Assembly (NCBI RefSeq): GCF_006345805.1
Contig: NW_021835445.1
Location: forward strand, 1-45,902
Source: Octopus sinensis
Taxonomy: Eukaryota
Direction of reading: 5' to 3'
DNA length: 45,902 bases
Part shown: positions 5,936-37,284 of the stretch, in pieces
Layout of the letters: each line of letters begins with the position of its first letter
Position numbering within the stretch: position 1 is the stretch's first letter
Translations under genes and position numbers: made by a program
Notes under the pieces: generated by a model
Told to the model about the DNA's origin: nothing
The model's input: only the letters and a program-made list of their open reading frames with translations
The model's database searches: none

Positions 5936-6690
<755 letters not shown>

Positions 6691-8198: not shown

Positions 8199-9018
8199 CA
8201 CAGTCTGAATAGTATTTGTAGAAAATTTCATGAAAGTAACTTAATTTCCCTCGTTTCATCAGGTTTAGAATATTATTTACGATGGGTAAAATCTAAACAA
8301 ATTTTGAATTTCCAAAGATTTGCGACAATAAAAGGTTTTGTACAAAGAGAAAACGAACTTAAATCTAAAAAATAAGACGAAATTATTACTTTACTCACGA
8401 TTAAATCTCAATCGTTATCTTCGAAGGAGTCCTTTTCCCTGCAGTTTTGATACAAAAGCAGAAATTCATTCAGAAAAGTCGCTAATTTCAGAAAAGGGAT
8501 CAAAGAACTTCTCAGACACCAGAAACGATCCTGAGAAAAAAATACCTTTAAAATGGGGTGTGTATAAAACATGAATTAGTTTGTTTTGAATAATGAAACG
8601 AAATTGTAGTATGGTATCAAACTTAATGGCAATTTTCTTTTTGTTCTGAGCTTAAATTCGGTCGATGTTAATTTTATCTTTCATAGCTTCGGAATCAATA
8701 AAATAAAGATTCAGACAAAAACAGAAGTCGATGGTAGTCCAACCAGCGTATCAAGTGAAGCCTAGGAGGTCTCTACATATGCTAGAAATGGCAGCCAAAT
8801 CTCTTGAATTTACATGCAAACGAGAGGGAATTGTGGTGGTGAAATATGGCAGATTCAGTTTTAGGGGTTTTTTGGTAAATTTTTTACAAACCTGTTCCAA
8901 CATTTCACGTGATTCTATTTATTAAAACTTATTAAAACTTCGATCGTTGTATGCCTGGTCGTCATAATGTTGCCACCATGCACAAAATGCCAACATCTCT
9001 GATGAGTAAAAATGCCCT

Positions 9019-9390
9019 TTTACTCTTTTACTTGTTTCAGTCATCCGACTGCAGCCATGCTGTCGTCTTTAGTCGAGCAATTCGACACCAGGACTTATTC
9101 TTTGGAAGCCTAGTACTTATTTTATCATTCTCTTTTGCAGAACCGTTAAGTTACGGAGACGTAAACACACCAGCATCAGTTGTCAAGCGGGGACAAACGC
9201 AGACTAACAAACACACATATATATACGATGGGCTTCTTTCAGTTTCTGTCTACCAAATCCACTCACAAGGTTTTGGTCAGCCCACTCCAGAAGTAGAAGA
9301 CACTTACATAAAGGGGCCATGCAAGGGGACTGAACCCCGAACCTGTGTGGTTAGGAAGCAAGCTTCTTACCGCACAGTCACGTCTGTGCC
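9019..9390 (-). mobile_element. SINE family 1
   Basis: Reverse complement of the family-1 head and tail; counterpart of 36031-36581. Confidence 0.8.
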
Positions 9391-9903
9391 TATAATGAAG
9401 TATTTCCATTTATGGTTTGCGTATCTATTTCTAGCATAACAACCTATGAGGTAATGCCATCACTGAAGCATGAAAAGACATTCCTCATCTCTCATACACA
9501 CAACTGGACAAACATTGACAATATTTTTTTATTCATATCATACATGGAATATATATGTTACGGAGATGTACTTGCATAGCAAGTGACCTGATCTGAGATC
9601 GTGTGGTGGAACGAAAAACAATTGCAGCATGGAAGGTGCTTATAAGCCATTAAAAAGACACACAAAAGCCGTTCGATTCACTTCAACATTTAAATTTAAT
9701 TTGTCAAAATATTTCCGTCGCTTTCAGACCGCGACCTTTTCACTGACAAAATTCTGAATATTATGAAAAAACAGCTTTTATTAAAAATATCAGAATTGAT
9801 GAGGATATATAAAAATATAGTGTTAGCAACTTGTTATCACATGCTGTTATGTCTTCTTTATTGTGAGGATATATTTATTGTTGTTGTTGTTTGTTTGTTC
9901 TTT

Positions 9904-10185
9904 CTCGAGCCATGCCTAGATCATAAGGGCCAGTTTCCTGGCATATAGGTTCACCTCCTGGACGGGACGCCAGTCCGTCGCTGGTGAGCTGCAAGATGCA
10001 GGAGGAAAGAGTGAGAGAAAGTTGTAGCAAAAGAGTCAGCAGAAGTTCGTCATTACCTTCTGCCGGAACCGCGTGGAGCTTAGGTGTTTCACTCATAAAC
10101 ACACACATTGTCCAATCTGAGATTCGAACCCGTGATCGCTCGACCGCAAGTCAGCTGCTCTAACCACTAGGCCATGTGCCTCCAC
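9904..10185 (-). mobile_element. tRNA-derived SINE (family 2)
   Basis: Reverse complement of GTGGAGGCACATGGCCTAGTGGTTAGAGC...GGGTTCGAATCTC, with clear A and B boxes. Confidence 0.85.
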
Positions 10186-10498
10186 ATACATTTATTGTTA
10201 AATAAGATATTCCTTTCAACAAATGACTTTTGATATTGATACAGTCACTCTTCTCTCTGATGAGAAATATATCTGTAGTTAATTGTCTTTTTTCAGAGAA
10301 GGATATACCACAGAATCAGTTACATGGTTTCCCTTCCATATCAATGTGTGTCTGTGTTTATCTAAGAGATTTATTTGAGAGAACCATTCACCACAGATAT
10401 CACAATGACATGGTTTCTCTCCTAATGAATGAGTCTGTGAGTGGTCAAGTGATCTATTTCAGAGAATGATTCACCACAGGTGTCACAAGGATGTGATT

Positions 10499-12703
10499 TC
10501 ATGCTGAATGAATACCTTTGTGTTTATTTAAATGTCCCTTTTGAGTGAATGATCTACCACAGATATCACATGGATATGGTCTCTCACCTGTATGAATACG
10601 TTTGTGATTAGTTAAGTAGGCTTTTAAAGAGAATGATTTACCACAGATATCACAGTGGTAAGGTTTCTCACCTGTATGGACAAATCTGTGAGTGGATAAG
10701 TCACCACTTCGAGAGAATGATTTACTACAGATATCACAGTGATATGGTTTTTCTCCTGTATGAATACGTTTGTGCTGAGTCAAATTACTCTTTTGAGAGA
10801 CTGATTTACCACAAATATCACAATGATGTGGCTTCGCTCCTGTATGAGTAAGTTTGTGTTTACTTAAATGTTCCTTTTGGGAAAATGATTTCTCACAAGT
10901 ATCGCAATGATATGGTTTCTCTCCTGTGTGAATATGTTGGTGTTTAGCTAAGTTAACTCTCACGGAGAATGATTTATCACAGATATCACACTGAAAAGGT
11001 TTCTCTCCTGTATGAACAAGTTTGTGAATAGCTAATTCAGACCCTTGAGAGAATGATTTACCACAGATATCACAGTGATATGGTTTCTCTCCTGTATGGG
11101 CACGTTTGTGTACAGTTATAGAACTTCTGTGAGCAAATGATTTACCACAGATATCACAGTGGTGTGGTTTCTCTCCTGTATGGGTAAGTTTGTGATGAGT
11201 TAAATTAGATTTGCAAGAGAAAGATTTATCACAGTTGTCACACTGATAAGGTTTCTCACCTGTATGAATACGTTTATGGGTGTATAAATAACTTTTGCGA
11301 GAGAATGATTTACTGCATATATCACAGTGATACGGTTTCTCTCCTGTATGAATGCGTTTGTGAAGAGTAACTTTACCACTCTGAGAGAATGATTTACCAC
11401 AGACATCACAGCGATATAGTTTCAATCCTGTATGAGTCTGTTTGTGTAGAGTTAGAGTATTTTTATGAGAGAATGATTTACCACAGGTATCACAGTGATA
11501 TAATTTCTCACCTGTATGAGTGCGTCTGTGAATAGTTAAATTAGTTTTGTAAGAGAAAGATTTACCACAGGTATCACAATGATATGGTTTCTCTCCTGTA
11601 TGAATACGTTTGTGAAGATTAACTTTACTACTTTCAGAGAATGATTTACCACAGATATCACAGTGATATAGTTTCAATCCTGAATGAACATGTTTGTGTA
11701 CAGCTATGGTACTTCTGTGAGAGAATGATTTACCACAGATATCACAGTGATATGGTTGCTCTCCTGTATGAATATGTTTGTGAGCGGTTAAGTGGTGACT
11801 ACGACTGAATGATTTACCACAGATATCACAGTGATATGGTCTCTCTCCTGTATGAATATGTTTGTGAGCGGTTAAATGGTGACTACGACTAAATGATTTA
11901 CCACAGATATCACAGTGATATGGTCTCTCTCCTGTATGAATACGTTTGTGTGCAATTAAGAGATCATTACGAGAGAATGATTTACCACAAATATCACAAG
12001 TGTATTTTCTCTCACCTGTATGAGTAGGTTTGTGATTAGATAAGGTATTTTTGTGAGTAAATGATTTACCACAGATATCACAATGATATGGTTTCTCACC
12101 TGTATGAATGCGTTTGTGAGCACTTAGATGGGGCTTTTGAGAGAAAGATTTTCCACAGACATCACAGTGATATGGCTTCTCACCTGTATGGATATGCATG
12201 TGAATAGCTAAAATAGATTTTTGAGAGAATGATTTACCACAGATATTACAGTGGTATGGCTTCTCACCTGTATGAACACGTCTGTGTTCAGTTAAGGTAT
12301 TCCTGTGAGGAAATGATTTCCCACAGGTATCACAATGATATGGTGTCTCACCTGTATGAATGCGTTTGTGAGCAGTTAAGGTATTATTTCTAGAGAATGA
12401 TTCACCACATATGCCGCAATGGTATGGTTTCTCTCCTATATGAATATTTTTATGAACATTTAAGGTATTTACCAGAGAGAAGGATTTACCACAGACATCG
12501 CAATGATGTGGTTTCTCACCTGTATGAACATGCTTGTGATTTGTCAAGGTATTCCTTTGAGAGAAAGATTTACCACAGATATCACAGTGATAGGGCTTCT
12601 CACCTGTATGAATGCGTTTATGAATAGCCAATGCATTATTTGCAGAGAATGATTTACCACAGATATCACAGTCGTATACAGATTTTCCTCTTTCTTTTGG
12701 CAT
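10499..12703 (-). CDS. ZNF-B1: intact C2H2 zinc-finger protein, 734 aa, 26 tandem fingers, no effector domain
   Basis: Single ORF with first in-frame ATG at 12703 (MPKERGKSV); 26 CxxC-12-HxxxH units with TGEKP-type linkers counted from the translation. The track start at 12745 is a non-ATG codon. Confidence 0.92.
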
Positions 12704-13131
12704 CTCTGCAGCTAAAACTAACGAAACTCCAAGATTCTCACACAATTCCTCTTTCTGTAATTTCTTTCTTCAACAAAATGGTCTGGAAATTTCCTTTCTT
12801 CTTGTTTCTATATTTTATTCCTAACAAATGTTACAACTGCCATATTTTTATCAAATATAAGCTTTACTGATATCTTAAGATGTTGCAAATGTCTTTTTAA
12901 ATTTATCCAAGTTTATTCAGAATTCAAATTTAGGTTTTACCAATTTCAGAGTAAATCCAAGAAATTTCACCAATAATGTCACCCAGAAGAAATATTTTAC
13001 TGAAATTCACTGTTAATTTACATAAACAGGGTTCTTATATCCAGTTCTGTGTAACATCATCTTCAAAATATGATAAACATTGATGACGCTTCTGCAGTAA
13101 AATTCCTCTGATGCCAATGTCCTCTGATATT

Positions 13132-15260
13132 CTGAAATAAGAGAGAAACAACAGTTTAAGACAGAGTGTAGCTTTGGTTATGACAAAGGCTTGGTGTTCA
13201 TTTATATACGACATTTACTGCTACATTTTTTTTAAACAAGGCTTCATGAAAACACAGACTCAATCTTATATGAACATTGTATTTGAGAGGAATTGAAGGT
13301 CTTCAACAGATAACATTGTGTAACAAGATATTTGTCCTTGGGTAGCAATTGCTTTTTCCTACTTGCTAAACGTATCTTTTTATGTGTTCAGTAAGTTAAC
13401 GGAAAGAAACAGGAATCTTTTCGGTTTGACCGGCAGTTTTTTAAAATAATTTCCACGAAACTAAACACTTTTAAACTTCGTATACTGGTAGAATGTGTTT
13501 ATAAAACATCTTTTTCTCTTGGCTTTATTGAGAAAATTCTACAGTTTGTAAGATATTTGTTGTTTTTTTTTTCTTCAATTTCTGCAATTTCAACCAATCA
13601 CTGACGTCTATTGAGGTGAAAACATCCTGTGCCGTATGAATATGTGCCTCGTTTAAGAAACAGATAGGGTTTATTTACATTTCTAAATAAAAAAAAGATA
13701 ACCTTCTGCCACCCCTAACCCTAACACAGATTGAAATGCAATAGATCGATACTAGGGTCATTATTATGGGTGACAATTTCATATGAAACTGCTAGAAAAA
13801 ACTGCCGTTCAAACCGAAAAAATCCTGTGTCTGTTTTGTTTTTGTCTTTTTTTGTATTTATATGTTGTGGAATGTGAACACACAGAGGAACCTGCCCACA
13901 CAGACACAGAGGAACAAGCACTCACACACACACACCCACAGAGGAACAAGCACTCACACACAACCCATTGGCTTTCTCTTCCTAACTGACAATTAACAAG
14001 ACATGTGGTCACGGAAACGACCTTATTAAGTGTTTACATTAGTTCGAGTCAAAACGAAAGATCGCCCTATTTCCTTCAGTTTCTTTCCGATAACTTACCG
14101 AACACATAAAAAGAATCGTTGATGTGAACAATACTGATACATTAATAACAAATATATTATAGAAACGGATGTCCAAATGAGAACTTCAGCTACGACAGAC
14201 AATGGCAGGATATACATATATAACACTTACGTATTATTTATAGACCCAATGTAGAGGAGGAAGGTATCACAATCGATCCATTGTAGACAAAAAGCAGATA
14301 TTATTTAGATCCGGTAAGGACGAGGTCGCAGTATGTTCAGGTAGTGAGAACTTAAGCCAAGGTAGACATTGACAGCTTCGTAAGAAATTCTAGGTTTTAT
14401 TATAGACGTTATGTTTTTAAGATTAGCGTAATAAAGAATTCAGTAGATGATTTCTCTGCATGCTTAGTTAGCAATCACGTCTATCGAATTAAATCTCAGC
14501 TAATTTATCTGTTGAACGGATGTGACCGGTAATATACACGAGGGTCAATCAACAGCAGGGAATGGAAAAATATGGCGGGAGAAAAAGTGTGGGAATTGCT
14601 AGGGGGAAATAACTCTACATTTAAAGAGTTCTTTATTCACACGTAAAGTTATTTAGAGTTCAGTCGGTGTACCAGTTATACGCGGTGAAATATGTTTTAG
14701 GAGTTAATCATTTTTATATCTGTGACAAACGTTGGATATATAATTTGATGAAGTGGGGGTAAAATTAATGTATTTTTCTTTACTACCCACAAGGGGCTAA
14801 ACACAGAGGGGACAATCACGGACAAAGGGATTCAGTCGATTATATCGACCCCAGTGCTTAACTGGTACTCATTTAATCTATTGCTTTTCAATCTGTTTTC
14901 GGCTTAGGGTGGGAGAAAGGGTATTTCTTTTTTCTTCAGAAATGTAAATAAACCCAATCTGTTTCTTAAACGAGGGACATATTCATATGGTACATAATGT
15001 TTTCACATCAATAGACGTCATTGATTGGTTGAAATTGCAGAAAAACAACAACAAATATCTTACAAACAATAGAATTTTCTCAATAAAGCCAAGAGAAAAG
15101 ATGTTTCATAAACACATTCTACCAGTATACGAAGTTTAAAAGTGTTTAGTTACCTAGAAACTATGTTACAAAGTGCCGTTCAAAAGGAAAAGATCCCTAG
15201 ATTCTGACCCCATGTATATCTGTCTAGTGCTTGACTGCTGTTTGACATGACCTGTCTCAC
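13132..15260 (-). other. Putative 5'UTR intron of ZNF-B1 (counterpart of 31225-32262)
   Basis: Donor ACG|GTGAGA at 15260 and acceptor CTGTTGTTTCTCTCTTATTTCAG| at 13132; both are conserved in B2. Confidence 0.5.
13410..13827. mobile_element. ~420 bp MITE; related copies at ~14880-15199 (inverted) and ~31286-31620
   Basis: TIRs CAGGAATCTTTTCGGTTTGACCGGCAGTTTTTT / AAAAAACTGCCGTTCAAACCGAAAAAATCCTG; shared internal block AAACACTTTTAAACTTCGTATACTGGTAGAATGTG. No TSD resolved. Confidence 0.7.
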
Positions 15261-16030
15261 CGTCGCCTTCTTCATCAGTTGCTTGTATGTTCCACCGGAC
15301 TAAATTGGTCGGTGAAGCTAAAAAGTGTAATGGAAATAGCTGGTGGAAAAAAAAATTAGGTTCGCTAATTTTTTATTTACTTAATAGAAAAAAGGTTGTA
15401 AAAGAAGAGTAAATTTAACTTGTTTTCCATTACACTCAAGCAAAAAATTATTTATGAATTTCTTTCTCTTTCGCGTTTTCTAAATATCATTGGGGATAGA
15501 TTAATAACTACCATCGATTTATGTTTTTGATTGGATCTTTATTTTATTGATTCCGAAGCTATGAAAGATAAAATTAACATCGGCCGAATTTCAGCTCAGA
15601 ACAAATTTAAAAATTGCCATTAAGTTTGATACAATACTACAATTTCGTTTCGGTATTCTAAACAAACTAATTCATGTTTTATACACACCCCATTTTTAAC
15701 GGTATTTTTTTCTCAGGGTCGCTTCTGGTGTCTGAGAAGTTCTTTGATCCCTTTTCTGGATGAATTTCTGCTTTTGTATCAAAACTGCAGGGAAAAGGAC
15801 TCCTTCGAAGATAACGATTTAGATTTAATCGTGAGTAAAGTAATAAATTCGTCTTATTTTTTAGATTTAAGTTCGTTTTCTCTTTGTACAAAACATTTTA
15901 TTGTCGCAAATCTTTGGAAATTCAAAATTTGTTTACATTTTACCCATCGTAAATAATATTCTAAACCTGATGAAACGAGGGAAATTAAGTTACTTTCATG
16001 AAATATTCTACAAATACTATTCAGACTGTG

Positions 16031-16246
16031 GGTACTACTAGCGAACAGTGGTCCCGGTGCGCGCACTCGCGCTAGCTAGTCGTAAGTAGTCGATCCTACA
16101 ACGACTTTTTAACCCTAAACCTAACCCTAACCTTAGTTTGTTTATAAAAATAATATATTTACTTAGTTTAAATTATTGTAGGATCGACTACTTACGACTA
16201 GCTTGCGCGAGTGCGCGCACCGGGACCACTGTTCGCTAGTAGTACC
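16031..16246. mobile_element. 216 bp MITE-1, copy in A2 arm
   Basis: Perfect 9 bp TSD CAGACTGTG at 16022-16030 and 16247-16255; GG...CC termini; long TIRs. Confidence 0.85.
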
Positions 16247-16950
16247 CAGACTGTGTATATTACGATTATATTGGAATTTAATATGATGAAATACATTTGC
16301 TGGGTTCCTACCCACACATAACTGACACACGTCACATTGTATGGGTGGTGGAGCATTTGTTAATTAAGTATTGCACATAATTAATTTACCATTATTATTA
16401 TTAGTTTCCGAGTTCAAATTCCGCCAAGGTCCACTTTCCCTTTTTCCAAATAAAATATAAATGAACGGTTGTGATTTCTAACCGTTTTTTAACCTGGGGT
16501 ACTCTGTGACGAACTTTGGGACTGCAGCATGGCAGTTTGTGAAGAAGCAGCAGAAGAACTCAGCTGAACCAACAATGCTTCTTATATTGATGCTGGGCAG
16601 AGGGAACCTTGTAGTTCAGGGGTCAGGATCACCAGGCTCTATGAAGAGAGTAACTGCAACGTATCCATGGTTGTGTAATCAGCTAAAGAAAGATTCACAA
16701 TGTCTCAGGCATTCAAATTCAAATTCACGTTAATGGAATTGGATGGTGACAGGGAATCTTGGGAATTCAAGAAAGGAGTGAAATGAAGGAAGAAAATGGG
16801 TGTGCTTATTAGATTTGTGTGTTGGGAATCAAAATTCTTACCACACAACCATCCCTGCACCTCTATGGACATGTCTATATAAAAATGTAGTAAAACTTTC
16901 ACTGTTTTAATCTCTCTAATTCCTAATTATCTTGTATGTTTTACACTGTT

Positions 16951-16968
16951 GTTTCTCTTTCGTTTCAG
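16951..16968 (+). other. Putative splice acceptor of the type-A coding exon (also 40948 +, ~7263 -, ~29622 -)
   Basis: CTGTTGTTTCTCTTTCGTTTCAG|ATTAT, homologous to the type-B acceptor CTGTTGTTTCTCTCTTATTTCAG|AATAT. Confidence 0.5.
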
Positions 16969-17545
16969 ATTATAGGATGACCTCAGCATCACAGGATTTT
17001 AATATAAACTACATCATTAGTATTGAACGTCTTACTCATAACACGTATAAACCTGTTTCTATAAATATATACTGAATTACTGCAAAATATATCTTCTGAA
17101 CTCTGACATATATGTAGCAAAATTTCTCTTCTTTATTGTCTGGAATACACAGAAAATTATATTTGTATTTGAATTAATCCTGTAACATTTGAACTGGGCA
17201 TACCATTCCCAAATATTCTGCATATTCTATGTTAAAATTGCCTACATCTGGCCTCTTACACTCACCCTGCAATGTCATTCTAAACATAAAGAATCAAATC
17301 GTTGAAATCTTAAAGCAATAAGATAATGAATGATTAATTCAGTAGAATTTGAATAAATAAGCATTAAATTTGACAGAGTAATCTGAATGTTAATGAGTTA
17401 AAGCAATTAAGAAGGCAGTTTGCAGCATCTTCAGATATTAACAAAGAACACTTTTGATGGAGATATATCAGTAGAAATATTTGTTAAGAGCAATATACGA
17501 GAAGAAGGAAAACATTTGTGTACTGTGACAAGAGAAAGGAAAATT

Positions 17546-19093
17546 ATGGAAAATGAATTATATCGGAGTGAAGTTGAATGTAAAAGTGAGTCTGAAGAAA
17601 TTGAATTTTCTGACGAGGAGAAGAATGAAAAGGGCAAAATATCATATCATTGTGATATCTGTGGTAAATCCTTCTCTGTAATCGTTATTTAACTAGGCAC
17701 AAGCGTGTTCATACAGCAAAGAAGCCATATCAGTGTGATATCTGTGGTAAATCATTTTCTCAAATGAATGGCTTGACTCATCACAAACATACACATACAG
17801 GAGAGAAGCCATATCATTGTGATATCTGTGGTAAATCTTTCTCTCGAAATGATCACATAACTATTCACAAACGTATTCATACAGGAGAGAAGCCATATCA
17901 TTGTGATATCTGTGGTAAATCATTTTTTCAAAAAATTAATTTGACTGACCACAATTGTATTCATACAGGAGAGAAGCCATATCATTGTGATATCTGTGGT
18001 AAATCTTTCTCTCGAAATGATCACATAACTATTCACAAACGTATTCATACAGGAGAGAAGCCATATCATTGTGATATCTGTGGTAAATCCTTTTCTCAAA
18101 AAATTAATTTGACTGACCACAATTGTATTCATACAGGAGAGAAGCCATATCATTGTGATATCTGTGGTAAATCTTTCTCTCGAAATGATCACATAACTAT
18201 TCACAAACGTATTCATACAGGAGAGAAGCCATATCATTGTGATATTTGTGGTGAATCATTTTCTCAAAATGGTCACCTGACTAGGCACAAACACATTCAT
18301 ACAGGAGAGAAGCCATATCAGTGTGATATCTGTGGTAAATCCTTCTCTGGAGAGAAGCCATATTAAACATGTGGCAAATCATTTGCTTATAGAAGCAGCG
18401 TAACTACTTCCTTAAACCTTCATGAGAGACAAACCATACCAGTCATCTGTCATCAGAATAAGTCCCGGGGTGAAGTTGCTCGATTAAACGTGGTGCTCCA
18501 GCATGGCCGCAGTCAAATGACTGAAACAAGGAAAAGAGTAAAGAGTAACTGGTAACTTAACTAAGCACAAGCGTGTTCATACAGAAGAGAAGCCATATCA
18601 GTGTGATATCTGTGGTAAAGCCTTCTCTGGAAGTAATCATGTAACTGCTCATAAACGTGTTCATACTGAAGAGAAGCCACATTGCTGTGATATTTGTGGT
18701 AAATCATTTTCTCAAAGGAATGGCTTGACTCATCACAAACATACACATACAGGAGTAAAGCCATATCCTTGTGATATCTGTGGTAAATCATTTTCTCAAA
18801 AAATTAATTTGACTGACCACAAACGTATTCATACTGGGGAAAAACCATATCATTGTGATATCTGTGGTAAATCCTTCTCTCATAGTGGCTACTTGTCTAA
18901 ACATAAACATATTCATACAGGAGAGAGGCCACATTGCTGTGATATTTGTGGTAAATCTTTCTCTCAAAGGAATGGCTTGACTCATCACAAACATACACAT
19001 ACAGGAGAAAAACCATATCCTTGTGATATCTGTGATAAATCATTTTCTCAAAGGGGAACCTTGACTAGACACAAACGCATTCATACAAAATAA
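17546..19093 (+). pseudogene. ZNF-A2: disrupted C2H2 zinc-finger gene (~15 finger units)
   Basis: MENELY leader (ATG at 17546). A 1 bp loss in finger 1 (TCTGTAATCGT vs TCTGTATATCGT in A4) gives a stop at 17692, and a 197 bp insertion at 18350-18546 interrupts a later finger. Confidence 0.85.
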
Positions 19094-19644
19094 GTCACAT
19101 CACTGTAATACCTGTGGTAAATCATTTTCCAAAAACAGCACTTTGTCTAGTCTCAAATGGTTTCATACATGAGAGAAGCCATATCATTGAAACATGTGGC
19201 AAATCATTTGCTTATAGAAGCAGCATAACTACTTCCTTAAACCTTCATGAGAGACAAACCATACCAGTCATCTGTCATCATTGTTCTCCATGTCCACATT
19301 TGCCAATCTCTCATTGGTGAGATGATATTTATTGAGGTGAATTTTTCACTGTCCAGATGCCCTTCCTGTTGCCAACCTTCACCTGTTTCAAACTAAAATA
19401 TTTCCCCATGACCTGACATGTTTTTGTGGCAGATTGGCGATGGACATTGCTTGCATGGCAGTGACACCCACAACTATCACACAGTCTCCAGGCAAGGATA
19501 TAGTAACACACACACACATTCATAAGCCCCTCACACTTCTATGAAACATCCCCCTCTATCCTCTGTACCACTAATATTCCCCCACCACCACTACCTTTTG
19601 TGTATGTCCTCATACATCTCCATCACCATCCATTTCTCTCTATA

Positions 19645-19865
19645 TACTCTTTACTCTTTTACTTGTTTCAGTCATTTGACTGCGGCCATGCTGGAGCACC
19701 GCCTTTAATCGAGCAACTTCACCCCGGGACTTATTCTGTTTTAAGCCCAGTACTTATTCTATCGGTCTCCTTTGCTGAACTGCTAAGTGACGGGGATGTA
19801 AACACTCCAGCATCGGTTGTCAAGCAATGCTAGGGGGACAAACACAGACACATAAACACACACAC

Positions 19866-19915
<50 letters not shown>

Positions 19916-20042
19916 GACAGGCTTCTTTCAGTTTCCTTCTACCAAATCCACTCACAAGGATTTGGTCGGCCCGAGACTATAGCAGAAGACACTTGCCCAA
20001 GATGCTACGCAGTGGGACTGAACCCGGAACCATGTGGTTGGT
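19645..20042 (-). mobile_element. SINE family 1 (probably chimeric)
   Basis: Family-1 tail and head in reverse; its two ends resemble different copies in the A4 flank. Confidence 0.8.
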
Positions 20043-20050
20043 TATATATA

Positions 20051-20598
20051 GACCAAAATGACCTGACACATTTGGAGGCTTAATAAAAGCACAAAATAAG
20101 AAATAATGGAAAGAAATATTTTATTTTCTGAATGTACATATAATGCCATTTTATTTCATTAAGTTTTAAAAATTAAATCAGCTAATAGCCTCCCATCATT
20201 GTCAACAAACTGTTGGAGACGTTCATGAAAGTTATCGATAGTTCTATGGATCATTTCTTCTGGAGTGGTGATATGGGATTTCTTCTTGTGGGGATATTTA
20301 AAATCAAAAGTATTCAGTCATCGCCTTCAATCTATTTATGGATTAAAACATGCAATTTGTGTAGAAATAGCAACCCTTCCAGGAGAAATGATCCATAGAG
20401 TTATCGATAACTTTCATGAACGTCTCAAACAATGTGTTGACAATGATGGAGGCTTTTAGCTGATTTAATTTTTAAAACTTAATGAAATAAAATGGCATTA
20501 TATGTACATTTAGAAAATAAAATATTTTATTTCCATTATTTCATATTTTGTGCTTTTATTAAGCCTCCAAATGTGTCAGGTCATTTTGGTCCACCCTG
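20051..20598 (+). mobile_element. Tc1/mariner-derived foldback element with transposase C-terminal remnant
   Basis: ORF 20265-20459 reads DFFLWGYLKSKVF...LKHAICVEIATLPGEMIHRVIDNFHERLKQCVDNDGG (mariner-like C-terminus). Right end is TTTGGTCCACCCTG|TA; ~215 bp inverted arms. Confidence 0.8.
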
Positions 20599-24620: not shown

Positions 24621-24621
24621 C

Positions 24622-24779: not shown

Positions 24780-24834
24780 TTATGGAGCAGTCACTGTCTA
24801 TATCTCATTTAGAGAATTATTATTGCTATATTTA

Positions 24835-25195: not shown

Positions 25196-25230
25196 TGTGT
25201 ATATAGATATGTGTGTATATACATATATAT

Positions 25231-25424: not shown

Positions 25425-25522
25425 ACAGATAAATTCCTTTATTTACATAATATTGAGGTCTCTTTCTTTCTTTTGTTATCTTACCGTTTTTACCAATATA
25501 TATATGTATGTATATATATTTA

Positions 25523-25849
25523 TGTCAATGGTTAGAGCATTAAGCTTATGAATGTGAGGTTGTGAGTGTGAATCCCGGACTGGGCTAAGTTTTGTGTTCT
25601 TGAGCAAGACACTTTATTTCACGTTGCTCAAGTTCACTCAGCTGTAGAAATGAGTTGTGATGTTACAGGTGCCAAGCTGTATCGACCCCTTTGCCTTTCC
25701 CTCGGATAACACTGGTGACGTGGAGCGGATAGGCCGGTATGAATGGGCGACTGCTAGTCTTCCATAAACAACCTTGCCCGGACTTGTGCCTGGGAGGGTA
25801 ACTTTTTAGGTGCAATCCCATGGTCAGTCATGACCGAAGGGGGTCTCAG
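25523..25849 (+). mobile_element. tRNA-headed CORE-like SINE
   Basis: TGGTTAGAGC A-box-like and GTGAATCCC B-box-like motifs, then TTGAGCAAGACACTT...CACTCAGCTGTAGAAATGAG, a CORE-like block. Confidence 0.6.
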
Positions 25850-26948
25850 CTTTCAGCCGGTCCCTGTAAAAGGCACCCCGTCCTAGTTCATGTAAAGAGC
25901 ACACATGCTGATCCATGTGGTTATTCAACTTACTCCTTCCCCTGAAATTGCTGGCCTTGTGCCAAAATAATGTCAGAAACAATAATGCCTTGATATATGA
26001 GTTAATTTCTTCCTGGAGATTGCTCGTAAAGTGAAAACTCATAAAGCAAAGCAATAATTTCCCATAGAAGCAATGTTATAAATTGTAATTCATTCCCAGA
26101 AAAATATTTTACCAATAAAATTTATAATACTTGCAAATAAATGACAATAAAACAACAGTAGAATGTAAAGAATATTTTATGGAAAGTCAAAACAATGTCA
26201 AGATTATTTAGAATAAACAAAATATTATTATTATAATTGTTTTCTGAATCACTTTCACAAGACACAGGGACACCATCATTTGTAGACGTGACCACTGATT
26301 CACAAGCAAAGAAACAAGTCTAGAGTTGTTTACTGAGAAGCATTCCTTTGCTCTTTATAAACTTCTTGGTAAGACACAGATGCATTTGTTATGGTTGTAG
26401 AAACTTTCAAAATTTGGATGTTGTGCTTGAAAAATAAAACTCATAAACAATGTCTGTAACTTGGGAAATGAATCTATTCCTCATGAAATGTGTTCTCTGT
26501 CTGAGGGACATCCATGCTTCTTCTTTTTTGTGTGTTCACATCCTGAACTAGTTATTGCACAAATTAAATTTTTGGATGCACAAGTGAAATCAGTCTCAAT
26601 TATGAATCTCTGTCCTTGTTTAACATGGAATTCCGAACCTTCAAGTACTTTCAAGAATATTCCACCTTTCGACATCTGCATTCTATTGTTGAGCACCCAT
26701 TACACTCTCAGAGTGGTTGGTGAAAGGAAGAGCATCCAGCCGTAGAAACCATGCGAAATCAGACAGGAATCAGATGCAGCCTTCCAGCCCTGGTCAAAAT
26801 GTACAACCCATGCCAAGCATGGACACCTGGGTAAGTGTCTTCTATAATAACCTCGGGCCAACCAAAGCCCTGTGAGTGGATTTCGTGGATGGAAACTAAA
26901 TGAAGCCCGTTATGTGTAGATTGGTATGTGTGTGTATATCTCTCTCTA

Positions 26949-27329
26949 TTTACTCTTTTACTTGTTTCAGTCATTTGACTGTGGCCATGCTGGAGCACTG
27001 CCTTTAGTTGAGCAAATCGACCCCGGGACTTATTCTTTGTAAGCCCAGTACTTATTCTATCGGTCTCTTTTGCCGAGCCACTAAGTTATGGGGATATAAA
27101 CACACCAGCATCGGTTGTCAAGCAATGCTAGGGGGACAAACACACACATGTATATATACATCTATACAACAGGCTTCTCTCAGTTTCTATCTACCAAATC
27201 CACTCACAAGGTAATGGTCGGCCCAGGGCTATAGTAGAAGACATTTGCCCAAGATGGCATGCAGTGGGACTGAACCCGGAACCATGTGGTTGGGTAGCAA
27301 GCTACTTACCACACAGCCACTCCTGCGCC
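26949..27329 (-). mobile_element. SINE family 1, full-length head
   Basis: Ends in ...CACACAGCCACTCCTGCGCC (5' head on the minus strand). Confidence 0.85.
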
Positions 27330-28279
27330 TATGTTTGTGTTTGTGTTTGTCCCCTAATATCGCTTGACAACCGATGCTGGTGTGTTAAGCAGTTTGGCAA
27401 AAGGGGCAGATAGAATAAGTACTAGGTGTAGAAAGAATAAGTCTTGGGTATCCATTGTCTGCTTTGGCAAGGTTCCCATGGCTGGAGGCCCTTCCTAATG
27501 CCGACCCCTTTACTGAGTGCATTGGGTGCTTTTTATGTGGCACCAGCATCATTGGGAATCAGCAAGTAACTTGCAAGATAAAGATCCAATCAGTTGTCAG
27601 AGGGAGTGGAAGCGAGGGGGATGGCTTTTTGTCAGTTGAGAGGTTGATGTATAACAGCAGGAGAGAGACGAGTGTCTTACTATAGAGGAGAAACCTGACA
27701 ATTCCAGTAGGAAAAGAAAGGAGAGAATGATAGATGTATAGAGAGAAATGGATGGTGATGGAGATGTATGAGGACATACACAAAAGGTAGTGGTGGTGGG
27801 GGAATATTAGAGGTACAGAGGATAGAGGGGGATGTTTCATAGAAGTGTGAGGGGCTTATGAATGTGTGTGTGTGTGTGTTACTATATCCTTGCCTGGAGA
27901 CTGTATGATAGTTGTGGGTGTCACTGCCATGCAAGCAACGTTCATCGCCAATCTGACATAAAAACATGTCAGGTCACGGGGAAATATTTTAGTCTGAAAC
28001 AGGTGAAGGAAGGTTGGCAACAGGAAGGGCATCTGGACAGTGAAAATTCACCTCAATAAATATCATCTCACCAATGAGAGATTGGCAAATGTGGACATGG
28101 AGAACAATGATGACAGATGACTGGTATGGTTTGTCTCTCATGAAGGTTTAAGGAAGTAGTTACGCTGCTTCTATAAGCAAATGATTTGCCACATGTTTCA
28201 ATGATATGGCTTCTCTCATGTATGAAAACGTTTGAGACTAGACAAAGTGCTGTTTTTGGAAAATGATTTACCACAGGTA

Positions 28280-29185
<906 letters not shown>

Positions 29186-30314
29186 TTAATTGCTTTAACT
29201 AATTAACACTCAGATTACTCTGTAAAGTTTTTTTTTCAAAATTCTTCTTTATTAATCATTGATTATCTTATTGCATTAAGATTTCAACGATGTGATTCCT
29301 TATGTTTATATGACATTACAGGGTGAGTGTAAGAGGCCAGATGTGAGCAATTTTAACATAAAATATGCAGAATATTTGGGAATGGTATGCCCAGTTCAAA
29401 TCTTAAAGATTTAATTCAAATACAAATATAATTTTCTGTGTATTCCAGACAATAAAGAAGGGAAATTTTGCTACATATATGTCAGAGTTCAGAAGATATA
29501 TTTTGCAGTAATTCAGTATATATTTATAGAAACAGGGTTATACGTGTTATGAGTAAGACGTTCAATATTAATGATGTAGTTTATATTAAAATCCTGTGAT
29601 GCTGAGGTCATCCTATAATCTGAAACGAAAGAGAAACAAGTGTAAAACATACAAGATAATTAGGAATTAGAGAGATTAAAACAGTGAAAGTTTTACTACA
29701 TTTTTATATAGACATGTCCATAGAGGTGCAGGGATGGTTGTGTGGTAAGAATTTTGATTCCCAACACACAAATCTAATAAGGACACCCATTTTCTTCCTT
29801 CATTTCACTCCTTTCTTGAATTCCCAAGATTCCCTGTCACCATCCAATTCCATTAACGTGAATTTGAATTTGAATGCCTGAGACATTGTGAATCTTTCTT
29901 TAGCTGATTACACAACCATGGATACGTTGCAGTTACTCTCTTCATAGAGCCTGGTGATCCTGACCCCTGAACTACAAGGTTCCCTCTGCCCAGCATCAAT
30001 ATAAGAAGCATTGTTGGTTCAGCTGAGTTCTTCTGCTGCTTCTTCACAAACTGCCATGCTGCAGTCCCAAAGTTCGTCACAGAGTACCCCAGGTTAAAAA
30101 ATGGTTAGAAATCACAAAAAGGGAAAGTGGACCTTGGCGGAATTTGAACTCAGAAACTAATAATAATAATGGTAAATTATTTATGTGCAATACTTAATTA
30201 ACAAATGCTCCACCACCCATACAATGTGACGTGTGTGAGTTATGTGTGGGTAGGATCCCAGCAAATGTATTTCATCATATTAAATTCCAATATAATCGTA
30301 ATATACACAGTCTG

Positions 30315-30438
30315 GGTACTACTAGCGAACAGTGGTCCCGGTGCGCGCACTCGCACAAGCTAGTCGTAAGTAGTCGATCCTACAATTTTCTAAACCAAGT
30401 AAATAAATTATTTTTAAAAGGTCGTTGTAGGATCGACT
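30315..30438. mobile_element. Internally deleted, truncated MITE-1 copy in A3 arm
   Basis: Left TSD CACAGTCTG and left TIR intact; the telomere-like core and most of the right TIR are missing. Confidence 0.7.
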
Positions 30439-31169
30439 GTAGAAAATTTCATGAAAATTTCCCTCGTTTCATCAGGTTTCGAATATTATTTACGATGGGT
30501 AAAATCTAAACAAATTTTGAATTTCCAAAGATTTGCGACAATAAAAGGTTTTGTACAAAGAGAAAACGAACTTAAATATAAAAAATAAGACGGAATTATT
30601 ACTTTACTCACGATTAAATCTAAATCGTTATCTTCGAAGGAGTCCTTTTCCCTGCACTTTTGATACAAAAGCAGAAATTCATCCAGAAAAGGGATCAAAG
30701 AACTTCTCAGACACCAGAAACGATCCTGAGAAAAAAAATACCTTTAAATATGGGGTAAGTATAAAAGATGAATTGGTTTGTTTTGAATACCGAAACGAAA
30801 TATTAATATTGTACCAAACTTAACGGCAATTATTTAGGCCAAACATTATTTTTTTCCTATTTTGTTTTTTAGCTTAAATTCGGCCGATGTTAATTTTACC
30901 TTTCATAGCTTCGGAATAAATAAAATAAAGATTCTGTCAAAAACGTAAGTCGATGGTAGTTACTAATCTATCCCCCACTGATATTTAGAAAATACTGATA
31001 TTTAGAAAATGTGAAAGAGAAAGAAATTCATAAATAATTTTTTGCTTGAGTGTAATGGAAAAAAAGTTAAATTTAGTCTTCTTTTACAACCTTTTTTCTA
31101 TTAATTAAATAAAAAATTAACGAAACTAAATTTTTTTCCCACCAGCAGTTTCCATTATACTTTTTACCT

Positions 31170-31230
31170 TCACCGACCAATTTAGTCCGGTGGAACATAC
31201 GAGCAACTGATGAAGAAGGCGACGGTGAGA
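31170..31230 (+). promoter_or_regulatory. Candidate promoter / first non-coding exon of type-B gene
   Basis: CCAAT in GACCAATTT, a locally GC-richer stretch, then donor GACG|GTGAGA (GT at 31225); conserved at 15255-15320 in B1. Confidence 0.4.
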
Positions 31231-32694
31231 CATGTCGTGTCAAACAGCAGTCAAGCACTAGACAGATATACATGGGGTCAGAATGTAGGGATCTTTTCCT
31301 TTTGAACGGCACTTTGTAACATAGTTTCTAGGTAACTAAACACTTTTAAACTTCGTATACTGGTAGAATGTGTTTATGAAACATCTTTTCTCTTGGCTTT
31401 ATTGAGAAAATTCTATATTTTGTAAGATATTTGTTGTTGTTTTTCTTCAATTTCTGCAATTTCGACCAATCAATGACGTCTATTGAGGTGAAAACATTAT
31501 GTACCATATGAATATGTCCCTCGTTTAAGTAACAGATTGGGTTTATTTATATTTCTGAAGAAAAAAGAAATACCCTTTCTCCCACCCTAAGCAGAAAACA
31601 GATTGAAAAGCAATAGATTAAATAAGTACCATTTACGCACTAGGGTCGATACCATCGACTGAATCCGTTCGTCTGTTCTTGTTTGTCTCCTCTGTGTTTA
31701 GCCCCTTGTGGGTAGTAAAGAAAAATACATTAATTGTACCCCCACTTCATCAAATTATAAACCAACGTTTGTCACGGATATAAAAATGATTAACTCCTAA
31801 ACCAGTCTCACCGCGTATAACTGGTACACCGACTGACCTCTAAATAATCTTAAGTGTGAATAAAGAGCTCTTTAAATGTAGAGTTATTTCCCCCTAGCAA
31901 TTCCCGCCCTTTTTCTCCCGCGCTATTTTTCCATTCCCTGCTGTTATTTTTAAAAAACTGCCAGTCAAATCGAAAAGATCCCTGTTTCTTTCCGTTAACT
32001 TACTGAACACATAAAAAGATACGTTTAGCAAGTAGGAAATAGCAATTGCTACCCAAGGACAAAAACTGTGTTACACAATGTTATCTGTTGAAGGCCTTCA
32101 ATTCCTCTCAAATACAATGTTCATGTAAGATTGAGTCTGTGTTTTCATGAAGCCTTGTTTAAAAAAAATGTAGCAGTAAATGTCGTATATAAATGAACAC
32201 CAAGCCTTTGTCATAACCAAAGCTACACTCTGTCTTAAACTGTTGTTTCTCTCTTATTTCAGAATATTAGAGGACATTGGATTCAGAGGAATTTTACTGC
32301 AGAAGCGTCATCAATGTTTATTATATTTTGAAGACGATGTTACACAGAACTGGATATAAGAACCCTGTTTATGTAAATTAACTGCGAATTTCAGTAAAAT
32401 ATTTCCTCTGAGTGACATTATTGGTGAAATTTCTTGGATTAACTGTCCCAAATGGAGTAGAATATAATTTTGAATTCTGAATGAACTTGGATAAATTTAA
32501 AAAGACGTATGCAACATCTTAAAGATATCAGTAAAGCTTATATTTGCTAAAAATATGGCAGTTGTAACATTTGTTAGGAATAAAATATAGAAACAAGAAG
32601 AAAGGAAATTTCCAGACCATTTTGTTGAAGAAAGAAATTTCAGAAAGAGGAATTGTGTGAGAATCTTGGAGTTTTGTTAGTTTTAGCTGCAGAG

Positions 32695-34998
32695 ATGCCA
32701 AAAGAAAGAGGAAAATCTGTATACGACTGTGATATCTGTGGTAAAGCATTCTCTGCAAATAATGCATTGGCTATTCATAAACGCATTCATACAGGTGAGA
32801 AGCCCTATCACTGTGGTATCTGTGGTAAATCTTTCTCTCAAAGGAATACCTTGACAAATCACAATCATGTTCATACAGGTGAGAAACCACATCATTGCGA
32901 TGTCTGTGGTAAATATTTCTCTCTGGTAAATACCTTAAATGTTCATAAAAATATTCATATAGGAGAGAAAGCATACCATTGCGGCATATGTGGTGAATCA
33001 TTCTCTAGAAATAATACCTTAACTGCTCACAAACGAATTCATACAGGTGAGACACCATATCATTGTGATACCTGTGGGAAATCATTTCCTCATAGGAATA
33101 CCTTAACTGAACACAGACGTGTTCATACAGGTGAGAAGCCATACCACTGTAATATCTGTGGTAAATCATTCTCTCAAAAATCTATTTTGGCTATTCACAT
33201 GCATATCCATACAGGTGAGAAGCCATATCACTGTGATGTCTGTGGAAAATCTTTCTCTCAAAAGCCCCATCTAAGTGCACACAAACGCATCCACACAGGT
33301 GAGAAACCATATCATTGTGATATCTGTGGTAAATCTTTTACTCACAAAAATACCTTATCTAACCACAAACCTACTCATACAGGTGAGAGAAAATACCATT
33401 GTGATATTTGTGGTAAATCATTCTCTCGTAATAATCTCTTAATTGCACACAAACGTATTCATACAGGAGAGAGACCATATCACTGTAATATCTGTGGTAA
33501 ATCATTCAGTCGTAGTCACCATTTAACCGCTCATAAACATATTCATACAGGAGAGAAGCCATATCGCTGTGATATCTGTGGTAAATCATTCAGTCGTAGT
33601 CACCACTTAACCGCTCACAAGCATATTCATACTGGAGAGCAACCATATCGCTGTGATATCTGTGGTAAATCATTCTCTCACAGAAGTACCATAACTGTAC
33701 ACAAACATGTTCATTCAGGATTGAAACTATATCACTGTGATATCTGTGGTAAATCATTCTCTCAAAGTAGTAAAGTTACTCTTCACAAACGTATTCATAC
33801 AGGAGAGAAACCATATCATTGTGATACCTGTGGTAAATCTTTCTCTTACAAAACTAATTTAACTATTCACAGACACACTCATACAGGTGAGAAATTATAT
33901 CACTGTGATACCTGTGGTAAATCATTCTCTCATAAAAATACTCTAACTCTACACAAACAGACTCATACAGGATTGAAACCATATCGCTGTGATGTCTGTG
34001 GTAAATCATTCTCTCAGAGTGGTAAAGTTACTCTTCACAAACGCATTCATACAGGTGAGAAAGCATATCACTGTGATATATGCAGTAAATCAGTGTGACA
34101 ACTGTGATAAATCTTTCTCTTGCAAATCTAATTTAACTCATCACAAACTTACCCATACAGGTAGAAACCACATCACTGTGATATCTGTGGTAAATCATTT
34201 GCTCACAGAAGTTCTATAACTGTACACAAACGTGCCCATACAGGAGAGAAACCATATCACTGTGATATCTGTGGTAAATCATTCTCTCAAGGGTCTGAAT
34301 TAGCTATTCACAAACTTGTTCATACAGGAGAGAAACCTTTTCAGTGTGATATCTGTGATAAATCATTTTCCGTGAAAGTTAACTTAGCTAAACACAAACG
34401 TATTCACACAGGAGAGAAACGATATCATTGCGATACTTGTGAGAAATCATTTTCCCAAAAGGAACATTTAAGTAAACACAAACTTACTCATACAGGAGAG
34501 AAGCCACATCATTGTGATATTTGTGGTAAATCATTCTCTCAAAAGAGTAATTTGACTCAGCACAAACGTATTCATACAGGAGAAAAACCATATCACTGTG
34601 ATATCTGTAGTAAATCATTCTCTCGAAGTGGTGACTTATCCACTCACAGATTTGTCCATACAGATGAGAAACCTTACTACTGTGATATCTGTAGTAAATC
34701 ATTCTCTCGAAGTGGTGACTTATCCACTCACAGATTTGTCCATACAGGTGAGAAACCTTACCACTGTGATATCTGTGGTAAATCATTCTCTTTAAAAGCC
34801 TTCTTAACTAATCACAAACGTATTCATACAGGTGAGAGACCATATCAGTGTGATATCTGTGATAGATCATTCACTCAAAAGGGACATTTAAATAAACACA
34901 AAGGTATTCATTCAGGAATGAAATCACATCATTGTGACACCTGTGGTGAATCATTCTCTGAAATAGATCACTTGACCACTCACAGACTCATTCATTAG
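32695..34998 (+). pseudogene. ZNF-B2: truncated paralog of B1 (ORF stops after 16 fingers, 467 aa; ~28 units in total)
   Basis: 62 bp deletion at ~34092 relative to B1 gives GTG TGA at 34093-34098; a further 1 bp loss at ~34162; downstream fingers are open again to 34998. Confidence 0.85.
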
Positions 34999-35234
34999 GA
35001 GAGAATCCATGTCATTGTGATATCTGTGGTGAATGGTTCTCTCAAATAAATCTCTTAGATAAACACAGACACACATTGATATGGAAGAGAAACCATGTAA
35101 CTGATTCTGTGGTATATCCTTCTCTCAAAAAAGACAATTAACTACAGATATATTTCTCATCAGAGAGAAGAGTGACTGTATCAATGTCAAAAGTCATTTG
35201 TTGAAAGGAATATCTTATTTAACAATAAATGTAT

Positions 35235-35516
35235 GTGGAGGCACATGGCCTAGTGGTTAGAGCAGCTGACTTGCGGTCGAGCGATCACGGGTTCGAATCT
35301 CAGATTGGACAATGTGTGTGTTTATGAGTGAAACACCTGAGCTCCACGTGGTTCCAGCAGAAGGTAATGACGAACTTCTGCTGACTCTTTTGCTACAACT
35401 TTCTCTCACTCTTTCCTCCTGCATCTTGCAGCTCACCTGCGACGGACCGGCGTCCCATCCAGGTGGTGAGCCTATATGCCAGGAAACCGGCCCTTATGAG
35501 CTAGGCATGGCTCGAG
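35235..35516 (+). mobile_element. tRNA-derived SINE (family 2)
   Basis: TGGCCTAGTGG A box and GGGTTCGAATCTC B box; counterpart of 9904-10185. Confidence 0.85.
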
Positions 35517-36030
35517 AAAGAACAAACAAACAACAACAACAATAAATATATCCTCACAATAAAGAAGATATAACAGCATGTGATAACAAGTTGCTAACAC
35601 TATATTTTTATATATCCTCATCAATTCTGATATTTTTAATAAAAGCTGTTTTTTCATAATATTCAGAATTTTGTCAGTGAAAAGGTCATGGTCTGAAAGC
35701 GACGGAAATATTTTGACAAATTAAATTTAAATGTTGAAGTGAATCGAACGGCTTTTGTGTGTCTTTTTAATGGCTTATAAGCACCTTCCACGCTGCAATT
35801 GTTTTTCGTTCCAGCACACGATCTGAGATCAGGTCACTTGCTATGCAAGTACATCTCCGTAACATATATATTCCATGTAAGATATGAATAAAAAAATACT
35901 GTCAATGTTTGTCCAGTTGTGTGTATGGGAGATGAGGAATGCCTTTTCATGCTTCAGTGATGGCATTACCTCATAGGTTGTTATGCTAGAAATAGATACG
36001 CAAACCATAAATGGAAATACTTCATTATAG

Positions 36031-36581
36031 GCACAGACGTGACTGTGCGGTAAGAAGCTTGCTTCCTAACCACACAGGTTCGGGGTTCAGTCCCCTTGCA
36101 TGGCCTCCTTCTACTTCAGGAGTAGGCTGACCAAAATCTTGGGAGTGGATTTGGTAGACGGAAACTGAAAGAAGCCCTGGCACGTAAAAAGCACCCACTA
36201 CACTCTTGGAATGGTTGGCGTTAGGAAGGGCATCCAGCTGTAGAAACTCTGCCAAATCAAGATGGTGCAGCCATCTGGTTCGCCAGACCTCAGTCAAAAC
36301 CGTCCAACCCATACTAGCATGGGAAGCAGACGTTAAACGATGATAATGATGATGATGATGATGATATATATATGTATGTGTGTGTGTGTGTTTTGTCCCC
36401 TCAACATTGCCTGACAACCGATGCTGGTGTGTTTACGTCCCCGTAACTTAGCAGTTCGGCAAAAGTGAACGATAGTATAAGTACTAGGCTTCCAAAGATT
36501 AAGTCCTGGGGTCGATTTGCTCGACTAAAGGTGGTGCTCCAGCATGGCCACAGTCAAATGACTGAAACAAGTAAAAGAGTA
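36031..36581 (+). mobile_element. SINE family 1 with a nested (GAT)n-tailed retroposon fragment at ~36178-36365
   Basis: The insert TGGTTGGCGTTAGGAAGGGCATCCAGCTGTAG...GATGATGAT is absent from the paralogous copy at 9019-9390; related pieces lie at ~26700-26825 and ~27450-27560. Confidence 0.75.
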
Positions 36582-37284
36582 GAAGGGCATTTTTACTCAA
36601 TCAGAGAAGTTGGCATTTTGTGCATGGTGGCAACATTATGACGACTAGGCATACAACGATCGAAGTTTTAATAAAAAGAATCCCGTGAAATGTTGGAACA
36701 GGTTTGTAAAAAAGGTACCAAAAAAAAAAAACCCCTAAAACTGAATCTGCGATATTTCACCACCGCAATTCTCGTTTGCGAGTAAATTGAAGAGATTTGG
36801 CTGCCATTTCTAGCATATGTAGAGACCTCCTAGGCTTTACTTGATACGCTGGTTGGACTACCATCGACTTCTGTTTTTGACTGGATCTTTATTTTATTGA
36901 TTCCGAAGCTATGAAAGATAAAATTATGTTTCAGCTCAGAACAAAAAGAAAATTAACATGCATTCAGTCAGAACAAAAAGAAAATTGCCATTAAGTTTGA
37001 TACAATACTACAATTTCCTTTCGGTATTCAAAACAAACTAATTCATGTTTTATACACACCCCATTTTTAACGGTATTTTTTTTCTCAGGATCGCTTCTGG
37101 TGTCTGAGAAGTTCTTTGATCCCTTTTCTGGATGAATTTCTGCTTTTGTATCAAAACTGCAGGGAAAAGGACTCCTTCGAAGATAACGATTGAGATTTAA
37201 TCGTGAGTAAAGTAATAATTCCGTCTTATTTTTTAGATTTAAGTTCGTTTTCTCTTTGTACAAAACCTTTATTGTCGCAAATCG

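Follow-up and report, generated by a model that had tools for sequence, protein, structure and literature searches.

The unplaced contig C11916 of Octopus sinensis (NW_021835445.1), whose entire 45,902 bp make up the window analysed here, carries two units of C2H2 zinc-finger genes, in each of which a gene, B, is enclosed by two inverted arms formed by copies of a second gene, A, each arm being at least 3 kb long, and B lies in opposite orientations in the two units. The initial annotation proposed that the A genes act as inversion arms, and that flipping of B changes which A gene is head-to-head with it. The locus appears, however, to be not a working invertible switch but a stretch of a rapidly duplicating zinc-finger cluster. 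The account to which most weight can tentatively be given, although it falls somewhat short of an even chance, is that an old mirror duplication, a recent direct duplication of ~21 kb and patchy gene conversion together shaped the locus within a fast-duplicating C2H2 cluster. The window ends inside a repeat, and it was compared with the single assembly from which it comes, which is the whole sample and consists of 2.72 Gb in 13,516 contigs, with ~30 chromosome-scale scaffolds.

Self-BLAST of the window reproduces the gene order of the initial annotation, namely A1(-) B1(-) A2(+), a spacer, and A3(-) B2(+) A4(+) (Table 1). The reversal of B between the units is equally evident, as B1 and B2 are inverted copies in which 9230-13449 matches 36177-31944 and 14547-15986 matches 31948-30456. 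The matches that define this layout are kilobase-scale, with at least 90% identity, and chance is therefore not an issue. The long open reading frames (ORFs) of the window are C2H2 zinc-finger arrays (Pfam zf-C2H2 / zf-H2C2_2), the dominant repeat period is 84 nt, which is the C2H2 finger period, and G+C content varies along the window from 30 to 43%.

The genealogy of the arms is dominated by one pair. Quartet sites in columns aligned in all four arms number 42 for the A2+A4 grouping and 6 for each of the other two splits. In the 2.2 kb preceding the finger array, the part for which outgroup alignment was possible, 15 of 22 informative sites give the A2+A4 split, and at 12 of these 15 the outgroups show the state common to A2 and A4 to be derived and that of A1 and A3 to be ancestral. 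Substitution distances rise from 2.5% for A2-A4, through 6.6% for A1-A4, 6.7% for A1-A2 and 7.6% for both A2-A3 and A3-A4, to 9.0% for A1-A3, the most distant pair; the two arms within a unit thus stand 6.7% (unit 1) or 7.6% (unit 2) apart. In maximum-likelihood trees, A2 and A4 group with 95% support in the proximal kilobase, and trees further out contain (A3,A5) at 100%, (A2,A4) at 95% and (A1,A6) at 56-87%, where A5 and A6 are arms on a second contig that is described below. A grouping of A1 with A3 was never recovered in the arm trees. Sisterhood of A2 and A4 extends to their distal 3' flanks, F and F', as claimed initially, with 19892-20301 matching 44408-44802 and 20298-21167 matching 45024-45902 at 96%.

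Because A1 and A3 are the most divergent pair and never form a clade, the units are not simple direct duplicates. They had been described as looking like direct repeats, partly from coding markers that are indeed present, KITFD and EIFKSN in A1 and A3, and KNTFD and EIFVKSN in A2 and A4, but the signal that sets A1 and A3 apart from A2 and A4 consists almost entirely of states derived in the latter two. Simple inverted duplication of a whole unit, taken alone, is also rejected, as A4 is the sister of A2 rather than of A1 and possesses A2's flank; the pattern named at the outset as speaking for it, A1 with A4 and A2 with A3 throughout, was looked for, and A2 and A4 were found to be sisters from 27 bp inward of the junction. 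Windowed distances between arms are strongly mosaic, ranging from 0.5% to 9%: all arms lie within 1.2% of one another at A2 positions 16442-16866, the arm that stands apart at 16867-17268 is A1, and at 15507-15920 and 17269-17682 it is A3. This patchwork of divergence indicates that conversion has been frequent.

All four A arms terminate at one identical base (ACTACCATCGA), in agreement with the initial annotation. Past this edge, A1 and A4 continue into the flank at the tail of B, a junction designated J_t, and A2 and A3 continue into the flank at the head of B, designated J_h. Homology between the units crosses both junction types, through the match of 8317-9188 to 37283-36409 and the match of 14547-15986 to 31948-30456 given above. 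A paralogous locus on scaffold C2 (195.827-195.838 Mb) contains a divergent pair, <-B A->, with J_h contiguous. Scaffold C27 has, at 10.0-10.8 Mb, a tandem array of ~40 more distant paralogues whose matches to the A head are at 67-78%; in the three of them that were examined, 15-18 bases of upstream sequence next to the edge resemble the J_h context and not that of J_t. J_t is known solely from A1, A4 and a 690-bp fragment at C27:15.891 Mb. The contiguity of J_h at C2, its resemblance to the C27 paralogues and the restricted occurrence of J_t show that J_h is the ancestral junction and J_t a single derived breakpoint. The sharp end common to the arms is defined by the J_t breakpoint.

Several other identities for these junction sequences were considered and rejected. 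The C2 locus is not a full triplet, consisting only of <-B A->, and the B-tail flank was not found there. The fragment at C27:15.89 Mb is not a placed allele of the contig, as it comprises merely 690 bp spanning J_t, at 95% identity. Nor is the arm edge a transposon terminus or the end of a mobile cassette: no terminal repeats and no target duplication are visible at the B ends, and no genome-wide family stops at the edge, the ~40 weaker matches being paralogous gene heads with J_h-like sequence upstream. The C27 array itself (10.04-10.79 Mb) is a same-strand tandem array of zinc-finger genes, with ~40 heads spaced 7-17 kb apart, and its similarity to the A head corresponds to a first-exon and promoter module. 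The contig probably belongs to a different neighbourhood of that scaffold, C27:15.9-16.7 Mb, which is home to closer fragments.

Since A2 and A4 are sisters with different junctions, J_h and J_t respectively, a J_t arm must at some point have exchanged sequence with a J_h arm, and A4, in which a J_t junction is joined to an A2-type body and to A2's 3' flank, is recombinant. The sites nearest the edge are informative in this regard. At 15518-15522 (A2 coordinates, here and for the following sites), A1 and A4 read CTTCTG as opposed to TTTATG and CTTACG in A2 and A3, and a derived base present in both A2 and A3 at 15521 is absent from A4. At 15534, which is 27 bp from the junction and is where derived states common to A2 and A4 begin, A1 and A3 read GAATC and A2 and A4 read GGATC. 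The initial annotation had described both markers, the first as following the cassette end and the second as following the arm, and each behaves as described. It had also listed a conflicting marker near 8408 in A1, which is real and corresponds to A2 position 15820, with G in A1 and A4 and T in A2 and A3. Sites 15521 and 15820 are the only ones that follow the cassette end, and 15820 is embedded among A2/A4-type sites.

Further evidence comes from contig C1494 (16.9 kb), which begins inside F' with unit-2-specific structure, differs from the right end of the window by a 1.6% mismatch over 880 bp, and is colinear with window positions 20189-30414 through F, the spacer and an arm, A5(-). Its spacer is 1.2% divergent where aligned base by base (the first ~1.4 kb; window 21187-22600), and A5 matches A3 along its length and past its tail, with an arm divergence of 0.8-3.4%. 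A5 is followed by 3.5 kb of scrambled sequence, beyond which lies a partial arm, A6(+), whose nearest relative is A1. The colinearity points to a recent direct duplication of ~21 kb, from A2-F-spacer-A3 to A4-F'-spacer'-A5. If C1494 continues the window, the array would run gamma(-) B1(-), alpha(+) F spacer beta(-), B2(+), alpha(+) F' spacer' beta(-), X, gamma(+), where the Greek letters denote arm types, and the ~21-kb direct repeat would be set in an older mirror frame that pairs A1 with A6 and B1 with B2. A patchwork of old and young blocks, a recombinant A4 and a recent large direct repeat, all seen here, are the marks of segmental duplication with interlocus gene conversion or unequal exchange. 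Two features of C1494 stand apart. The segment between A5 and A6 (C1494:11460-14900) is microsatellite-rich and holds an inverted copy of window 26755-27851, which lies distal to A3, and past A6 the contig jumps to spacer-like sequence (window 22678-22918), a local rearrangement that no model considered here explains.

The preferred history would begin with an ancestral divergent pair, <-B A->, to which one rearrangement would have added an inverted A copy at the B tail, forming J_t and the triplet A<- <-B A->. Mirror duplication of this triplet would then have created the pairs B1/B2, A2/A3 and A1/A6, so that the opposite orientations of B would date from the mirror duplication and not from a flip in place. 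The recent direct duplication would have followed, by unequal exchange or break-induced copying between two arms of the same orientation. The switch, located right where arm homology ends, would have kept the old J_t but joined it to an A2-type arm, which produced the chimeric A4. Patchy gene conversion among all copies would still be going on.

The B cassettes bear on this history through their uneven divergence. Divergence between B1 and B2 is 4.8-6.0% in non-coding sequence on the 5' side and reaches 9.6% in the tail flank, and such non-coding values, of 5-10%, are of the same order as the distance between A2 and A3. Across the finger exon, with third codon positions and the 3' untranslated region included, the two cassettes are only 2.2-3.0% apart. 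Differences at codon positions 1, 2 and 3 number 11, 18 and 20, and synonymous and non-synonymous codons stand at 15:29. These near-neutral counts and the equally similar 3' untranslated region reject purifying selection as the cause of the low central divergence, and point instead to conversion or to a younger age. The coding regions have also fared differently. B1 retains an intact ORF of 748 aa (10499-12745; Pfam zf-H2C2_2, E=1e-191, 24 stretches) and has a private insertion of 1102 bp at 13448-14549. In B2, which has one additional finger at 34595-34678, a 62-bp deletion disrupts the frame and divides the ORF in two (32653-34098 and 34372-34998). The last exons of A1 (6289-6813) and A2 (17435-19100, with a 196-bp insertion at 18351-18546) are frameshifted, and those of A3 (28283-29161; 293 aa, 7 fingers, zf-H2C2_2 E=7e-70) and A4 (41413-42471; 352 aa, 10 fingers, zf-H2C2_2 E=9e-81) are intact. 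Decay is thus complementary, as unit 1 keeps B with its A genes broken and unit 2 keeps its A genes with B broken, and this could be a real subfunctional loss after duplication or could stem from indel errors in the assembly.

A number of observations weigh against the duplication history. In the proximal-kilobase tree it is A1, not A3, that adjoins (A2,A4), with 76% support. The third B copy that this history predicts after A5 was not found in the assembly, scrambled sequence occupying its place, and a later deletion must be assumed. The exchange has to be placed within 27 bp of the edge of homology, which is not where simple crossing-over would be expected. The centre of B is as young as the A2/A4 pair, which means either that conversion homogenised it or that B is younger than assumed. 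Finally, the 1.6% difference across the 1-kb overlap with C1494 tells against the join on which the full array depends.

The same observations can be read, in part, as a direct tandem duplication of A<- <-B A-> F followed by a one-off or rare historical inversion of B in place through exchange between its arms, an unlikely course of events but one with several points in its favour. The arms that flank B are inverted, 3-5 kb long and identical over a tract of 244-356 bp, and B is reversed even though A2 and A4, together with F and F', are sisters in direct orientation. At 15521 A4 is without the base derived in A2 and A3, and at 15534 it has the one derived in A2 and A4, the outcome expected of an exchange at that point. 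Moreover, the 3-bp deletion at the start of the finger exon that yields EIFKSN is common to A1, A3, A5 and A6 and absent from the outgroups, and the B centre is as young as the A2/A4 pair. Yet A1 and A3 are 9.0% apart, the B flanks are 5-10% apart as opposed to 1-2.5% for A2/A4 and the spacer, and the succession of arm types gamma, alpha, beta, alpha, beta, gamma is unlike repeated direct units. The proximal pattern that a flip predicts, A1 with A4 and A2 with A3, appears in no window and is confined to sites 15521 and 15820, the latter within A2/A4-type sequence, and a flip would require, in arms of ~4.6 kb, a crossover no more than 27 bp from the inner edge. Flipping in place therefore fits the distances and arm types less well than the mirror and direct duplications do, and needs the same exchange at the edge of homology; as a full account, direct duplication plus one flip is disfavoured by the A1-A3 distance and by the arm types of C1494. 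Of the proposal that the A genes are inversion arms, what stands is that inverted arms flank B and that exchange between arms is required; the proximal signature of a flip is matched at those two sites only.

Transposon insertions help to decide whether the copies are separate loci at all. A4 has private insertions at 37284-39210, 39518-40184 and 43251-44395. The first is a foldback-type transposon of 1,927 bp whose terminal inverted repeats, ~615 bp long, are 96% identical; its target duplication, CGCAAATC, at 37276-37283 and 39211-39218, has 8 bp, a length that suggests a hAT-like element. The second, also foldback-type (667 bp, terminal inverted repeats of ~205 bp), has the 8-bp target duplication TGCGCGAG at 39510-39517 and 40185-40192, and sits within an older hairpin element that is common to all arms (A2 16029-16248). 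Such clean target duplications around private insertions indicate that the copies are real paralogues with separate histories rather than duplicates made by the assembler. It is accordingly improbable that the two-unit layout is an artefact, arising where an unplaced contig joins or duplicates haplotypes or collapsed paralogues that do not lie on a single molecule. The status of the sequence as an entire unplaced contig ending within a repeat, the imperfect overlap with C1494 and the several frameshifts, which could be indel errors, would be in keeping with an artefact. However, the units are 2.5-9% apart and are distinguished by kilobase indels as well as by the private insertions, a unique spacer of 6.5 kb joins them, and related copies of the junctions exist on placed scaffolds.

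Whether B still inverts is a separate question. Whichever two arms are compared, 244-356 bp of sequence located ~1 kb from the junction are perfectly identical (Table 1). This stretch is the likely seat of ongoing conversion or exchange, and recombination between any two arms, direct or inverted, is mechanistically possible. An exchange in this ~300-bp tract could in principle still flip B, together with ~1 kb of the promoter end of each arm, in the germ line, although this is hardly to be expected. Recurrent inversion of B, in the germ line across individuals or somatically, with a switch of the A gene that shares B's divergent promoter region, is likewise very improbable. The geometry would permit it, all arms contain the ~300-bp identical tract, recent patchy conversion means that the copies still interact, and comparable systems exist in yeast and human (PMC9731477, PMC3961182). 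But the arms within a unit are 6.7-7.6% diverged and not homogenised, each orientation occupies a separate paralogous unit rather than a single locus, and three of the six genes look broken (A1, A2 and B2, all frameshifted). In tests of limited reach, no recombinase-like ORF was found among window ORFs of at least 150 aa, the three non-finger ones having no Pfam match, and no inverted short crossover sites were seen at the cassette ends. The divergence of arms within units and the private transposon insertions of the units imply that whatever happened is old, and nothing shows present-day or regulated flipping, the chances of which appear slight.

Table 1. Positions of the A arms, B cassettes and associated features in the 45,902-bp window
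Feature	Position	Strand	Remarks
Arm A1, gamma type	4920..8738 (start approximate)	-	C2H2 gene; promoter end at 8738; carries J_t
Cassette B1	8739..15506	-	C2H2 gene; tail flank 8739-9230; head flank reaches 15506
Arm A2, alpha type	15507..20157 (end approximate)	+	carries J_h
Flank F	20158..21167	+	3' flank common to A2, A4 and contig C1494 only
Inter-unit spacer	21168..27736	no strand	6.5 kb, unique
Arm A3, beta type	27737..30960	-	carries J_h; nearest relative A5 on C1494
Cassette B2	30961..36856	+	inverted copy of B1
Arm A4, alpha type, chimeric	36857..44659 (end approximate)	+	J_t junction, A2-sister body, A2-type flank
Flank F'	44660..45902	+	direct copy of F, to contig end; overlaps start of C1494
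Identical tract	A2 16485..16840; A1 7744-7389; A3 30101-29746; A4 40464-40819	+ (A2)
Interspersed repeat copies	5187-5402, 9012-9233, 19647-19878, 24828-25224, 26946-27340, 36364-36585, 43014-43423, 44199-44604

Other repeats are abundant in the window. An interspersed repeat of ~220-400 bp, with at least 8 copies in the window (Table 1) and many genome-wide, marks the point at which arm homology stops distally, 27737 in A3 and 5407 in A1. Another two families resembling short interspersed elements lie in B, one at 13500-13826 and the other at 14876-15205, with an inverted copy at 13405-13746. The spacer contains a palindromic satellite of ~560 bp (24062-24625) that matches itself in direct and inverted orientation at 82-85%, and a spurious 204-aa ORF within it has no Pfam match. 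Two inverted fragments of ~210 bp form a foldback at 20051-20591, which starts ~100 bp inside the A2 part, and again at 44567-45303, where the unit-2 copy is split by an additional insertion of ~220 bp (44803-45023) that is present in C1494 too. The stretch downstream of the foldback resembles by eye the C-terminal end of a DNA-transposon transposase, and is a candidate for such a remnant.

Vertebrate KRAB-ZNF clusters are mosaics of segmental duplications with interlocus gene conversion and unequal crossing-over, and the octopus locus has much in common with zinc-finger cluster mosaics of this kind: C2H2 genes with multiple fingers at a period of 84 bp, dozens of paralogues on one scaffold, dense transposons, variable finger number, pseudogenes and patchy identity. 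Two traits are particular to this locus, its nested mirror arrangement, A<- <-B A-> ... A<- B-> A->, and an exchange point right at the limit of arm homology. Sex-chromosome palindromes are large inverted duplications that are maintained by arm-to-arm conversion, with arms more than 99.9% identical. They too have mirror-image gene copies with conversion tracts between arms, whereas identity here is patchy and mostly 91-97%. Expansions of C2H2 genes are known in cephalopods (PMC12513265, PMC10547256), and the cephalopod C2H2 paper among these sources mentions neither inversions nor gene conversion.

The closest formal parallels to a flipping cassette are a 24-kb flip/flop region on chromosome XIV of Saccharomyces, bounded by 4-kb inverted repeats that contain genes and are almost identical (PMC9731477), and human inversion polymorphisms that arise through inverted repeats (PMC3961182). 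As in these regions (PMC9731477, PMC3961182), a unique segment lies here between kilobase-scale inverted repeats that are themselves paralogous genes, the arms show signs of gene conversion, and the orientation of the segment varies relative to the outer flank. In contrast to the near-identical arms of the known systems, the arms here are 6.7-7.6% apart and show no such homogenisation. Both orientations occur there at the same locus in different strains or people and here in two old paralogous units, and beyond sites 15521 and 15820 the arm genealogy does not display the switch between proximal and distal relationships that flipping is expected to leave.

The locus adds no new mechanism; it behaves like the known hotspots of inversion and duplication that are bounded by inverted repeats (PMC9731477, PMC3961182), and its value would be raised only by polymorphic or recurrent flipping at one unit. 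If active flipping were true, individuals would differ in which A gene is head-to-head with B, and cephalopod zinc-finger clusters would gain a recurrent structural reshuffling of promoter neighbourhoods. A caution that applies more widely is that opposite orientation of a cassette between repeats is, by itself, no proof of an inversion switch. If the history proposed here is right, the locus would illustrate in detail the growth of a large zinc-finger family in an invertebrate, through segmental duplications, both mirror and tandem, in which the paralogous genes themselves act as recombination substrates, with junctions reused at one breakpoint and different copies decaying in each duplicate.

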